Of a stretch of DNA of 64,000 bases, positions 5,439 to 57,390 are shown piece by piece; within the stretch, counting starts at the first letter, position 1, and every line of letters begins with the position of its first letter. The DNA is from Octopus sinensis (taxonomy: Eukaryota): positions 85,312,001 to 85,376,000 of the forward strand of contig NC_042999.1 in NCBI RefSeq assembly GCF_006345805.1, read 5' to 3'. Position numbers and translations under genes: made by a program. The notes beneath the pieces are model-generated. The model searched no databases and was not told where the DNA came from. It saw only the letters and a list, made by a program, of their open reading frames with translations.

Positions 5439-5545
5439 TCAAAAGTTAAATTTGATTTCTCGATCAGAGAATTCCGATTGGATCTTCGCTTCCATTTTTT
5501 CATTCTGCTCAACGGTCAACCATTTTTTCCATGTATCTACGGCGC
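5439..5545 (-). CDS. SULT-like copy A, exon 5 (last coding exon)
   Basis: tttcag|GC GCC ... (G)[34 protein letters not shown]. Confidence 0.9.
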
Positions 5546-8500
5546 CTGAAATAACATGAAAAATTGTATATAAAAACAGACAGATAGTTATACTATACAT
5601 ATGTGTGTGAGTGTATAAACATACATGTGTACATATATATAGATATACACACACATGTGGACATTTACACACGTATATATATATATATATATGCATGTAT
5701 GTATGTATGTATGTATGATGTATATATGTGTACAGTCACCGGAAGTAACTTGCACGGACACCGGAAATACATCTGCCATCACCAGAGAAAACAAAGCAAC
5801 TACCCTGACCTTTCATTGGACAAAAGCTACCTACCTGCCATTCTATTGGACACTGGCTAAACATCACTGCTGATATTTTTGTATACATAGACATCATGAA
5901 TCGCTGTAAAGGCAGTTGGCTTTTTGGCACTCGACTGATGTAAATCGTGTCCCTCTCGTCTGCCACGCTCGCCACTCACGCCGCCTCGAACCTTTGTACT
6001 GCTTTTTCACACCTGAAATAAATCGCTGTATAAACTTACACCTCTTGTCTGCTCGTCATTTCAACTACTGCTTTCGTCTGTCCAGTTTTGCTGATTACGA
6101 GCACAGTCCTTTTCAGGGCTAATTCAAGTCTGATCTGAATGCGATAACAGTCCTTTTTAGGACTACTCTCAGATCCGATCTAATTACGATAACAGTCCTT
6201 TTTAGGACTATTCTTGGATCGGATCTAATTGCGATAACCGACCTTTTAAGGGCTACCCTCGAATGCGATAACATTCCTTTTTGGGACTACTCTCAGATCA
6301 GACCAGAAGTAGTGGCCAAGAATCTTACCCGCTACATATGTATGTATGTATATATGTATGTATGTATGTATGTATGTATGTATGTATGTATGTATGTATG
6401 TATGTATGTATGTATGTATCATTCAATACACACACACATACTACTTTTAGTTTCATAGCATGCCATGTATTTTCAGACAATTATCCAGACTCTTATCTTT
6501 ATTCCATCGCTGTTTCTTTTTTCTCATTCACATTTTTCTTTTTCTTTTTTCCTCTCTTTCTTTCTCGTTTTTTGTTTTCTTGCTTTTTCTCAAAGAGCAG
6601 CCATGTAGAATTTTGAGTCTGAATTAGTACCGGGTGTTACATGGCAAACTATACAAGCGTGTCATACCATTGCATTTTCAGAGGTATGAAACTAACAGTA
6701 ACTCTAATTTAAATCCTATTAGATATTTGTGTCAGTGGTTGAGATACGTTTTTTAGTTGTTCTCGTTAATAATGGATCAATATATTTGTGAATCATTCAT
6801 TCATGAATTTCACACACAACATGGACCAAAAACTTTCTTCTTAAGAAAATACATATTTAAATAAATTTTAATGCTATAAATAGCGAAAGCGAAACCGGTC
6901 GACAAACAGAATACAAACTATGTAAAGCGTGTGCATTTTCCTTCATTAATTTCTTATATATATTATAACTCACCACGTGGAAATAATCGAAATTCCTCCC
7001 TTTCGGTTATTTTATACACACACACACACACACACACACACATATATATATATATATATATATATATTATATATATATATATATATATATATATATATTA
7101 TATATATATATAATATATATATATATATATATATATATATTATATATTATATATGTATATATATATATCCAACAAGGACAAAAATTCTCAATTAAGACCA
7201 AGTTCACATGTGCTTCCCAGAACCTTATCTATGTCCTAACCCCTTGAGCAACATTTCTTGACTGGTAACTCTGAATACATGCCCAAAGACTTTGCACAAC
7301 ATTACTGCTTGCATTATCAGATGAACGGATAAGTGTATATCATCAGAAGATCATGCTCAGATATGTTAGCAGAAAACTCCAAGATGAAAGTAACATGGAG
7401 CATCAAAGCAGTTTATCATGGACCAACAACCGGATTACTAACTCTCATTTTGAAAGGTATACGTTTGCAATCCAGGTACACGAAATAGCAACCAAATACC
7501 TGATGCACAAAATGGACAGTGACACAGGAAATACACCAAATGTGATCCGATGTGGGCACATTGAGTTAACGCCGAAGATATCACTCACGCCGTAAACAGT
7601 CGTCCAAAAATATCATTGCCGTAGCCAAGACACTGTACAATGAGATCCATCGGAAAGATAATCGTGAGGCCAAAGAGGTAAGAACCCACAGTAGGGCACA
7701 GACCACAGTCACTCGTAATATGAAAGAGTAATGATGGAGTATCCCAGTGAAAACCTCAATCAAATGCAAACATAATAGACTAGGGATTTGGAACAAAGAA
7801 GAGAAACTATGCACTGTAGTGGAAATCAGTTGCCCAACAAATATCAACGTAAAGCTTAAGATCAGTGAAAAAGAAAATACCTATGATGAACTATTGAGAA
7901 ATTTACAGCTACTCTACTCGGATTACAAGTTCACATTTATCCCTGTAGGTATTGGGTCACAGGGGGATGTAAGAAACTGCTTAAGCACCAATTTTGGAGA
8001 ATTAGGCTTCTCAGAACCAGAAAGGAGAAAGCTAATTAGAAGATTACAGATGCAAACCATCACTGAAACTGTTAAATTTTGTAAAATTTACCAAAAGTTT
8101 AGCATTTAAGTATATATGTGTGCATGTCTAGACATGCTACTAAATGCATGAGAATACACACATACATAAAACAAAGCAAACAAATCTGCACAAGCACTGA
8201 CTCCAAATATTGCACATATACACGTAAAAAAGGCACAAATACCTTGCTAGTGTTGTCTAAAATTACAATGGAGGAACCTTGGATCTAGGTTAGAAACTGG
8301 CTCTTTCTGTACTGACAGGATATTTAGAAATAAAATTAAACAACATACATACATACATGCAAACATACACACATATACACACATGCACATACACACTCAC
8401 ACACACACACATATACACACAGTGGACCCTCCTGTCGTAGACAACACATGCGGCTTCCGCAAGAAAATGAGAGAGAGAGGAAGAAAGAAAGAAAGAAAGA

Positions 8501-55500: not shown

Positions 55501-57390
55501 AAAATTTCATTCGGTCATCTATAAACATGGTATGCAATTCTTTAGTACCTACCTTGGCTTTTCAGCAGGAAAGGCAAAGCATTGCGAAAGACCAATAATA
55601 GTAACTACAATACGAGAAGTATTGAATGGCTGAACAAGGGTCAAATCGCCAGATTTGGAAGGTTGCCCTCTGAATTTTATGATTAAATGCCAGATTTGTT
55701 TGGCAACATCTTGGCAACTGTCTATTGCAAGTGGCAGCAAAATAGAAGCTTTCTCAATTCTGTGAGGTGGGATGTGTTGATGTTGCTGAGAAAGAACGCC
55801 AACAAGCGGGACATTACAGACAATTTCCGTCCCATAACCCTGCTAAATGCAGAGTTTAAATCTTTGGTCAAGATATTAGCTCAGAAGTTGACGTTTGCCG
55901 TCGGTGATTTGGTCAGAGAACTCAAAAGTGTGCGATCCCCAATAGATTTATCTACGACAATCTCCACCTTATGCAATACATCATAGAAGGAATGGGTAAC
56001 AGATCTGGCGTTGGCAGAATCCTGATCAATTCGGATCAGTCGAAATCATTTGATAGGGTCGTCAATCGCTACTTGGAAGCAGTCCTAAAATCAGCTGGTT
56101 GTGGACCCGTTTTCAGTGGCTTGATTGCAGCAGTACACGGTGCTTGCTCGGTTATCAAAGAAAGCGGCCATCTCTTGGAACAGTTTCATATTGCGCTCTC
56201 GATCCGTAAGGAGTGTCCTCTCTCATTTCTAGTCTGGCTTGGCCCAGACCTCCAGATGGATTGGAACAGCTTCACACCGAACTGAGATGAGAGGAAACTA
56301 TTCCTGGAAAATCGATCATGGTTAGCTAATACCTAAATTATCTCTGTAAAAGCACTGCTGCTCTTCCCTTTGGCGGGGCTGCAGTCCTGAGCCAAGAAAA
56401 GAGTAAGATTAGGCGCCTGTCACCTGGAATGTCATCAGGTGCTCATTGCCCTTTACCAGTTGGGCAACGCGGTCGGTAGAAGTTCTATGTCAGCAATATA
56501 TAAAGACCCAGAGGGAGTAAGATCCATGATCTCCTCGGGGAACTCTGGGTGTCGACGAGGATGAAGTAGCTGGTCTGTGCCGGAGGAGTATTGCCGGTTG
56601 AGATGAACTCTACAGGCAGTTGGTGCAATGAAAATTTTAATATCATATAACAAATGCTTAAGCTAACAGCTTTTGTGTATTTTTAAATAGCTAATATGTG
56701 TCTTCCACGTTGCAGTCGTTTCAGTTGCAATACACGGTCTCGCATCAAATCACTTGCCTGGCAAATACACTTCCGAAATTTATTTAATAAATAAGCTGTA
56801 ATATGTGTCTCATTTGATTTCTTCACTTCGCTGATATCAAATGAAAAAGGGGTTCATAGTTATTAAAATAGATCCATTAGCCGCCTAATATACAAAATAA
56901 AAGAACACAAAATTAAAATAAATGTTAATTTATGAAATTGTGGCAGGGATAGGTAATCATCCGAGACTACATTGGCAATAGAATTTCACCCTTTAATATT
57001 GTAGTAGTAGTAGTAGTAGTAGTAGTAGTAGTAGAGTAGTAGTAGTAGAGTAGTAGTAAATTCTAAGACTACCTTCTCCTTTCATCCAAAGGTCGAAATA
57101 GCTGGGAAAATCTCCGTTGTATTCAAACACTTTAGCCCCCATCAAATGTCTGTAGAACGTCACCGCCATGGCTTTCGGATTGCGGTTTAGAAAGATAATT
57201 TTGTGATCCTTTAGTAATTCCGGGGGTAGAAATTTAGCAGGTAGGTGTGCACTCAAGAGCCGAGGTGACTTAGCTGATTCCAGATTTTCTATTGGCACCC
57301 AATCTAATAGCAAGTCTTCCTTCACAAGAGGAATCCTTTCACTGCTTCCTCTCAGTATCATACTAGTCAATTCAAACAACCAATGTGAAC
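52476..57390 (-). CDS. Cytosolic sulfotransferase-fold gene, divergent copy C (exons 2-5; exon 1 not found in window)
   Basis: Exons 57390-57073, 54744-54647, 54291-54114, 52573-52476, with the same phases as A/B. 65/105 identities to A in exon 2. Confidence 0.87.
53281..53451. mobile_element. 27-bp perfect inverted termini enclosing a (TA)n core
   Basis: aatggtgcaaaaatgaacttgggttca (53281-53307) / tgaacccaagttcatttttgcaccatt (53425-53451). Confidence 0.65.
54114..54291 (-). CDS. SULT-like copy C, exon 4
   Basis: caatag|GAT CAA ... [35 protein letters not shown]...GGTLYHS G|gtacgt. Confidence 0.88.
54647..54744 (-). CDS. SULT-like copy C, exon 3
   Basis: ttttag|TT CCT ... (V)[32 protein letters not shown]|gtaata. 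Confidence 0.88.
54926..54971 (+). ncRNA. Minimal hammerhead motif in a Penelope pLTR (~54880-55040; same family as 41070-41230)
   Basis: GACAC-CTGAAGA-A-GGCTG gagggtatat CAGCC-GAAAC-GTT-GTGTT. Confidence 0.55.
55350..55485 (-). mobile_element. Internally deleted family 1 SINE
   Basis: ggcggcgagctggcagaatc...gagttcaaatttcgccgaggtcgactttgcctttcatcc. Confidence 0.8.
55740..56620 (+). mobile_element. L1/Tx1-clade LINE reverse transcriptase remnant
   Basis: [20 protein letters not shown]...[13 protein letters not shown]...[10 protein letters not shown]. Confidence 0.85.
57073..57390 (-). CDS. SULT-like copy C, exon 2
   Basis: tttcag|GT TCA CAT TGG ... [10 protein letters not shown]...[12 protein letters not shown]...DLWMKGE G|gtagtc. 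Confidence 0.9.

Follow-up and report, generated by a model that had tools for sequence, protein, structure and literature searches.

How much of its cofactor site can a sulfotransferase family give up and still be maintained by selection, and what would its members then do? The question is raised by a 64,000-nucleotide stretch of the Octopus sinensis genome (GCA_006345805.1, CM016861.1:85312001-85376000; hereafter the window), in which we identified four members of a cytosolic sulfotransferase (SULT) family, all on the minus strand. A first reading of this DNA, here referred to as the original prediction, had described three of them (A, B and C) as tandem genes with open frames that lost the signature for catalysis and for binding of 3'-phosphoadenosine 5'-phosphosulfate (PAPS), and thus as candidate pseudo-sulfotransferases. 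Judging from sequence comparison, the members are working genes under purifying selection, and not decaying copies. They appear to form an atypical SULT clade, probably strongly impaired for canonical PAPS-dependent sulfuryl transfer, whose products may act as dimeric binders of ligands or nucleotides or as regulators, a reading to which we give about an even chance.

The gene models were rebuilt from the raw sequence by using minus-strand stop-free segments, inspection of splice sites and tblastn. Gene A (5439..20802, minus strand) has 5 coding exons (20802-20604, 14266-13949, 9840-9743, 8974-8794 and 5545-5439), which together give 903 nt, or 300 aa and a stop, with no internal stop and no frameshift. 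Gene B (23524..39196, minus strand), with 5 coding exons at 39196-38998, 32665-32348, 28207-28110, 27330-27150 and 23630-23524, also encodes 300 aa without stop or frameshift; it differs from gene A in 9 nucleotides and 6 amino acids, exons 2 and 3 being identical. The 5'-phosphosulfate-binding (PSB) loop of both reads TYPGTGSHW, with codon 65, GGA (Gly), at 20610-20608 in gene A and 39004-39002 in gene B. Thus, the spliced products and their uninterrupted frames were recovered as first described, and the motifs and codon-65 coordinates quoted at that time were all exact.

For gene C (52476..57390, minus strand), exons 2-5 were detected (57390-57073, 54744-54647, 54291-54114 and 52573-52476) and the C-terminal motif reads YHSGKVETWK. 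Nothing above noise was found for its exon 1 in the remaining 6.6 kb of the window (57.4-64 kb), and this exon probably lies beyond the right window end. The O. vulgaris orthologue of gene C, P0015, is 98% identical to it, and in O. bimaculoides the orthologue, P0020, includes an exon 1 that reads SYPGA. The fourth family gene, P0010 (299 aa; SYPGAGSHW, HSGK), lies at CM016861.1:85297861-85312142, and tblastn detected only its first coding exon in the window (142-1, minus strand, truncated where the window begins), with the remainder to the left. At least two family clusters are present on the same chromosome, at ~75.1-75.27 Mb and 85.29-85.37 Mb. The genes are already annotated under misleading automatic names; the protein of gene A, for example, is 100% identical to P0001, the NCBI entry "sulfotransferase 1A2-like isoform X1 [Octopus sinensis]". 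In the literature, we found no study on this family, on cephalopod or octopus cytosolic SULTs, or on this motif loss.

By profile and by fold, A and B are members of the cytosolic sulfotransferase superfamily, as had been supposed. PF00685 matched gene A with an E-value of 2.6e-47 and gene B with 8.4e-48 (161.8 and 163.4 bits, respectively, where the cutoff is 22), over positions 1-252 of the 255 in the profile. The protein of gene A was modelled with AlphaFold2 from a 131-sequence alignment; the model reached a predicted local distance difference test score of 93.2 and a predicted template modelling (TM) score of 0.91, and was soft only at residues ~241-270, the flexible cap loop ahead of the HSG motif. 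Foldseek aligned the model with complexes of SULT1A1, SULT1E1 and SULT1B1 with 3'-phosphoadenosine 5'-phosphate (PAP) at TM scores of 0.76-0.81. Chance open reading frames (ORFs) were considered and rejected, as the PF00685 match at E ~1e-47 is far above chance, and processed pseudogenes were rejected because introns are present. Orthology with SULT4A1 was rejected as well: the best solved relatives are SULT1A/1B/1C (E ~1e-35 to 1e-37), with SULT4A1 at 5.9e-28, and the clade nests with molluscan SULT1-like proteins.

An HMMER alignment to human SULT1A1/1A2 structures placed Gly65 at the position of Lys48, the catalytic PSB-loop lysine. His115 corresponds to His108, Arg136 to Arg130, Ser144 to Ser138, Phe200 to Tyr193 and Phe236 to Phe229, while His264-Ser265-Gly266 takes the place of Arg257-Lys258-Gly259. 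Neither Lys nor Arg is therefore present at the lysine position of the canonical PSB loop, TYPKSGTxW, and A and B keep just the Gly, Trp and Lys of the canonical RKGxxGDWK. The canonical catalytic His, the Arg and Ser of the 3'-phosphate-binding (3'-PB) motif and the stacking Trp and Phe, on the other hand, are all found. Across a 16-member alignment, Pro64, Gly67, His69 and Trp70 of the PSB loop are kept or nearly so, and the catalytic base His115 is unchanged in 16 of 16 members. Arg136 of the 3'-PB motif is also unchanged, together with Pro138 and Lys139, and position 144 is Ser in A/B and Thr in C and some paralogues. The adenine-stacking Trp70 and Phe236 (Trp53 and Phe229 in SULT1A1) are invariant, Gly266 and Trp271-Lys272 are kept, and so is the dimerisation motif K272-x3-T276-V277-x3-E281 (KxxxTVxxxE).

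Compared with canonical SULT1 enzymes (SULT1A1/1E1 and molluscan), the octopod family thus has the same fold (TM ~0.8), length, catalytic His, RNPK...VS motif, adenine-stacking Trp and Phe, dimer motif and arrangement in tandem clusters. It differs in the PSB-loop Lys, which is Gly here and Gly, Ala, Thr or Tyr across the clade; in Arg257-Lys258, replaced by His-Ser; in the GDW of the GxxGxxK motif, which became DTW; and in Lys106, which became Asn or Ser, a change that is also common in canonical molluscan SULTs. Three basic side chains would accordingly have been lost around the phosphosulfate and the 3'-phosphate, with the rest of the pocket kept. The claim that catalytic His and Arg were retained is confirmed by the invariant His115 and Arg136, while the broader one, a lost PAPS-binding and catalytic signature, holds for the three basic residues only: most cofactor contacts and the catalytic His are invariant, and the site is modified and not erased. 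A column scan also revealed family-specific basic gains, an invariant Arg147 at the SULT1A1 His141 position, beside the acceptor-clamping Phe142, and Lys267, right after the conserved Gly, which is lost again in A/B.

How unusual these replacements are was evaluated by searching 1.84 billion representative proteins with a family-only profile and aligning the resulting pool, together with later matches, to the profile (~390 related domains). The Lys48 column of the first pool (277 aligned domains) holds Lys in 179, Arg in 73 and another residue in 25, which means that Lys or Arg is present in 252 of 277. The 25 others comprise 20 octopod proteins, the multi-domain protein P0155 and odd domains in P0158 and P0187; all 20 octopod clade members have G, A, T or Y instead of the lysine. 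In a second pool of 108 molluscan and other relatives, 104 have Lys and 1 has Arg, and the 3 exceptions all belong to a cephalopod group annotated as 1B1-like. RKG was found in 231 related domains and the catalytic His in 287 of 292, whereas HSG is confined to the octopod family among the aligned domains. Both losses, that of the loop Lys and that of Arg-Lys in RKGxxGDWK, are hence real and restricted to one lineage, and outside cephalopods, including among molluscan SULTs, K/R and RKG are near-universal. Had such changes turned out to be frequent in active molluscan SULTs, the original prediction would have been refuted; in the sampled relatives they are rare. P0155 (889 aa) has three SULT-like domains, each of which is without the loop Lys (M/N) and without the catalytic His (Q/E); it is apparently an independent and more radical pseudo-sulfotransferase.

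The original prediction had several cofactor contacts disappearing together in an ancestor. The sequences instead show intermediates, and the losses are better described as stepwise. Other molluscs and the decapodiforms (Watasenia scintillans BBB86724.1 and Sepia esculenta transcripts) mostly have YPK[AS]GTHW, or SYMKSGCHW in Watasenia, with RKGxVGDWK. Next to these comes the single-copy 1B1-like gene of Octopus and Argonauta, with orthologues at 68-70% in transcriptomes (ERR12374249, SRR276660xx and ERZ21867824), which reads AYP[AS]SGTHW and has intact RKGQVGDWK and RNPKD...VS. Argonauta P0128 combines AYPYSGTHW with RTGK, and P0125, P0017 and P0018 combine AYPT[AS]GTHW with RSGK. The core family has P[GA][AT]G[SA]HW with HSGK (HTGK in P0014 and HNGQ in P0016), and finally A/B have TYPGTGSHW with HSGA, in addition to RSPKSS and the change of Tyr193 to Phe. 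By this series, A and B are the most eroded members.

In a neighbour-joining tree of 41 taxa (200 bootstraps, supports counted as bipartitions), the core HSG clade was supported by 100%, the core plus the RSG sequences by 93%, and all Lys48-less cephalopod sequences formed one clade with 73.5%, outside which the canonical enzymes of Watasenia and Sepia were located. Most parsimoniously, Lys48 would have been lost once, in one lineage of cephalopod SULTs, after which the genes duplicated in octopods alone and gave up first Lys258 and then Arg257. The 1B1-like SULT (O. sinensis XP_029658400.1 and its Argonauta, O. vulgaris and O. bimaculoides orthologues) is the closest outgroup. In common with the family it is without the PSB-loop Lys and has a GTHW loop and an NxH catalytic motif, but it is single-copy, located on another chromosome, has retained RNPKD...VS and RKGQVGDWK, and is more conserved (86% between Octopus and Argonauta, against 79% and 65% for family pairs). 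Since canonical SULTs with Lys48 and RKG are present in Watasenia and Sepia esculenta, the Lys-less clade is a side lineage and not the sole cephalopod SULT type. No canonical SULT was found in octopods among the best 120-150 matches per query, a non-exhaustive sample, and with a profile that included three outgroups the matches were mainly SULTs of insects and vertebrates and added no cephalopods.

Is the family maintained? The ratio of nonsynonymous to synonymous substitution rates (dN/dS) was calculated pairwise by the Nei-Gojobori method. Gene A gave 0.33 against C (dS 0.75), 0.27 against P0010 and 0.34 against P0005, at dS of 0.75-0.95 for the three comparisons; P0010 gave 0.19 against P0005 and 0.25 against the octopus cDNA P0009, with 62 of 299 codons (about one exon's worth) unmapped and dropped in the P0010 comparisons. 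In self-blastn, genes A and C could be aligned in their exons only, the introns being unalignable. P0009 comes from run SRR3401912, which a virome paper identified as an octopus meta-transcriptome, and its 903-nt ORF runs without interruption on a contig of 1213 nt; thus, at least one family member is transcribed and correctly spliced. In the core family, O. sinensis P0004 and Argonauta P0012, 79% identical, were paired with 100% bootstrap, indicating that the core family is older than the Octopus-Argonauta split. Identity between O. sinensis and O. bimaculoides is 82-92% for the family and, by an eye count, roughly 96% for the 1B1-like gene (P0272 vs P0274), so that the family would seem to evolve faster, as far as the eye count goes. 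That the genes were retained and duplicated again, as first proposed, is consistent with the ratios of 0.19-0.34 against paralogues, and not near 1 as in plain pseudogenes, as well as with the Argonauta orthologues, the spliced P0009 mRNA and the A/B duplication.

A peculiarity of A and B lies in their splicing. The donor of intron 2 is GC (AAG|GCAAGC), at 13947-13948 in gene A and 32346-32347 in gene B (minus strand), whereas the same site is GT in gene C, P0010, P0005 and P0017, that is, in all other paralogues examined, which indicates that the A/B lineage acquired the GC donor through a T-to-C change. If the donor is not used, the frame meets a TGA after 3 codons. Exon 2 is skipped in the annotated models P0013 and P0019 of O. 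vulgaris and P0288 and P0020 of O. bimaculoides, P0013 and P0288 being the annotated A/B orthologues; the skipping joins exon 1 in frame to exon 3 and removes 106 aa, and with them the catalytic His115 and the 3'-PB motif. Two other models, P0129 and P0287, read through the exon-2 donor. The skipped and read-through models reflect either real alternative splicing or systematic mis-annotation of the family. We also noted that P0133 (O. bimaculoides isoform X2) is chimeric, with a gene C-like exon-2 part and exons 3-5 of A/B type, which suggests that neighbouring tandem genes were read through or wrongly joined in the annotation of O. bimaculoides.

It is very unlikely, in our view, that these genes are plain or incipient pseudogenes, i.e. 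recent duplicates that have yet to gain stops. Such an explanation could draw on the non-canonical GC donor, on which A/B rely, on the exon-2-less annotation of both A/B orthologues, and on the comparison between A and B, which with a dN/dS of 0.48 over just 9 differences, 6 of them nonsynonymous, has too few changes to be informative. It could also draw on gene C, for which exon 1 is not visible within the window and the tail is shifted: the last exon (~52480-52502, minus strand) has two 1-nt gaps against gene A and P0015, and the last ~12 residues are changed, ending in SALLIEELI and a stop, compared with SELIDRGIKFNF in P0015. The tail change, however, leaves the SULT core untouched, and the gaps are possibly long-read assembly indels, as the context is AT-rich. 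Furthermore, the 300-codon frames of A and B are intact with consensus splice sites, identity with the O. bimaculoides orthologue of A/B is 86-91%, as in other family pairs, and decay is difficult to reconcile with the dN/dS of gene A against C, P0010 and P0005 or with persistence from before the Argonauta split.

The repeated duplication itself could be questioned on other grounds. Self-blastn revealed a tandem segmental duplication of ~18.4 kb (4132..39987), with unit 1 at 4132-21936 and unit 2 at 22233-39987, the match between the two being put at 95-99% identity. A 9.5 kb core (8651-18140 vs 27007-36538; exons 2-4 and introns) is 98.85% identical, compared with 87-95% in the flanks, a contrast that either gene conversion or a composite assembly could account for. 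If A and B were two haplotypes of one locus set in tandem by the long-read assembly, the re-duplication would be an artefact. The units adjoin at ~18.4 kb each, exons 2 and 3 in the near-identical centre show no difference, and the O. vulgaris orthologue P0013 mixes A-like and B-like states, all of which would fit two haplotypes. The divergence of the unit flanks, with indels, is nevertheless above what is expected for alleles, and tandem duplication is usual in this family, with its at least two clusters on the chromosome. Hence, we consider such an artefact unlikely.

What, then, would the proteins do? We suggest, at the even chance given above, that the ancestor was a cephalopod SULT lineage in which the catalytic PSB-loop lysine had already been swapped for Ala or Ser. 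Within octopods, Lys258 would have been lost first (RKG to R[ST]G) and Arg257 next (to HSG), and in the A/B lineage the next Lys would have gone as well (HSGK to HSGA), with Tyr193 changed to Phe. The products would still dimerise in the SULT manner and have two pockets, one shaped for a nucleotide and one for the acceptor, but canonical PAPS-dependent sulfuryl transfer by them is presumably strongly impaired. Their main role would be binding of small molecules or nucleotides, or regulation, as proposed for vertebrate SULT4A1, with the ligand specificities of the paralogues diverging. To our knowledge, every characterised PAPS-dependent sulfotransferase has a PSB-loop Lys or Arg that serves as general acid towards the leaving phosphate, and mutants of the Lys48 equivalent, in work attributed to Kakuta in 1998 and to Marsolais and Varin in 1995, were reportedly down by two to three orders of magnitude. 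Arg257 is described as absolutely conserved for PAPS binding, and minor alterations of the same loop leave SULT4A1 unable to bind PAP (PMC1847840). It is on the role of the loop lysine, the conservation of Arg257 and the loss of PAP binding in SULT4A1 that the impairment reading is based.

A SULT with no PAP binding has a documented precedent in SULT4A1, an atypical brain SULT of no known activity (PMC1847840). Like the octopod family, it is a conserved and selected SULT fold whose PAPS pocket has changed slightly, also at the Arg-Lys-Gly loop, and it keeps the catalytic His; small-molecule binding rather than catalysis has been proposed for it, and the octopod proteins would be alike if the pseudoenzyme reading holds. 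The two differ in how the pocket was altered. In SULT4A1 the loop Lys is still there, Trp53 is gone and the loop is shorter, with Arg-x-Gly out of register, whereas the octopod family keeps the Trp (Trp70) and the three-residue register (H-S-G) and loses Lys48, Arg257 and Lys258. They differ also in that SULT4A1 is single-copy and ultra-conserved, and the octopod family multi-copy, fairly fast-evolving and non-orthologous. A stronger version of our suggestion would have the lysine lost before the split of octopods and (probably) decapodiforms, after which more than 12 octopod tandem paralogues progressively shed their 3'-phosphate contacts and became true pseudo-sulfotransferases, i.e. dimers without catalysis that bind or buffer hormones, neurotransmitters or xenobiotics, or that regulate the remaining SULT by heterodimerisation. 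This we regard as possible, at a good deal less than an even chance.

Several observations weigh against impairment. His115, the loop Gly67, Trp70, Arg136, Ser/Thr144, Phe236 and Gly266 are found in every member, over more than one speciation depth, which is the pattern expected if an adenine nucleotide is still bound and the chemistry is still running. The 1B1-like gene, without Lys48 but otherwise fully canonical and strongly conserved, shows that loss of the lysine alone is compatible with a selected, possibly enzymatic function. The contact of Lys258 with the 3'-phosphate is mainly through the backbone, and partial replacement of Arg257 by His is feasible. Arg147 beside the acceptor pocket, or the Lys after the conserved Gly, could act as compensation, and, if octopods have no canonical SULT, the clade may be the sole source of cytosolic sulfonation there. 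The transcript evidence is for P0009 and not for A or B themselves, and a full-length product of these two hinges on the GC-AG intron.

Perhaps, therefore, the proteins are still active PAPS-dependent sulfotransferases with a rewired site, a lineage-specific detoxification or hormone-conjugating expansion in which Arg147, Lys267 or His69/His264 replaced Lys48 and Arg257; we hold this to be a real possibility, short of an even chance. Besides the unchanged catalytic His and the adenine and 3'-phosphate contacts in 16/16 members, the 1B1-like gene, the basic gains at positions 147 and 267 and the fact that no canonical octopod SULT was found among the matches, such a view is favoured by the tandem expansion at dN/dS of 0.2-0.34, typical of xenobiotic-metabolising families. 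A "sulfotransferase 1C2" was reported to rise, with cholesterol-metabolising and steroidogenic enzymes, in the optic gland of brooding O. bimaculoides (Wang and Ragsdale 2018, 10.1101/340984), and, if it belongs to the family, would point in the same direction; no gene ID is given there. Against it stand the nearly universal PSB-loop K/R in the ~390 sampled relatives, the K/R of the characterised enzymes and the absolute conservation of Arg257, all mentioned above, as well as the progressive erosion of cofactor-side charges, greatest in A/B, which resembles relaxed constraint on cofactor binding. The proposed compensation by other basic residues is, moreover, speculative.

We find it highly unlikely that the family represents abundant structural proteins recruited from an enzyme for a crystallin-like use in the lens or another tissue. 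The cephalopod S-crystallin (from GST) and omega-crystallin (from ALDH) are enzyme-derived, and the likeness, a duplicated detoxification-type fold with altered catalytic residues, is an analogy only, offering a general precedent. We found no literature linking cephalopod SULT-like proteins to lens or structural roles, and many moderately diverged paralogues under purifying selection better fit ligand-facing diversification than one bulk protein. The crystallin analogy of the original prediction has thus gained no supporting evidence.

The window is AT-rich (GC 0.28-0.41) and filled with microsatellites, and (TA/CA/TATC)n arrays generate long spurious ORFs all over it. A Pfam scan of the other long ORFs in the window gave a single, sub-threshold match to GIY-YIG (E=0.0013, 19.4 bits, cutoff 22.6), in a 138-aa ORF at 3697-4113 (minus strand), the remaining ORFs being microsatellite-derived; this ORF may have been left behind by a GIY-YIG mobile element, Penelope-like or of another kind. 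Another ORF, of 120 aa, including VVEISCP and with no Pfam match, was duplicated with the A/B units (7747-8109 and 25116-25478, plus strand) and looks like the tail of a retroelement ORF. Between genes B and C, at ~50638-50763 (minus strand), a translated stretch ending FYQRGIENLVERWEEVVNNKGEYI and broken by stops bears what we take to be a likeness to the C-terminus of mariner-type transposases, and it is probably a dead mariner-like element. At the microsatellite-rich right end, 60965-61411 and 63520-64000 form an inverted repeat of ~450-480 bp with 90% identity.

The PSB-loop Lys and the RKG loop of SULTs are treated as invariant in textbook phase-II enzymes, and here is a family that has done without them, under selection, for over a hundred million years. 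In this group, caution is due with automated names such as "estrogen sulfotransferase", "SULT1A2-like" and "luciferin sulfotransferase-like". The graded natural series, with loss of K48, then K258, then R257 and then K260, is ready-made for structure-function work. If the proteins are active, they would carry out PAPS chemistry without the canonical general acid, which would be of mechanistic interest. If they are binding proteins, they would represent a second, independent and much larger conversion of a SULT into a binding protein after SULT4A1, and, if true pseudo-sulfotransferases, the first pseudo-SULT family with several genes and, among invertebrates, a counterpart to SULT4A1. And if octopods are without canonical SULTs, their conjugation of steroids, bile-acid-like compounds and catecholamines must differ, which would be relevant to the steroid programme of the optic gland.

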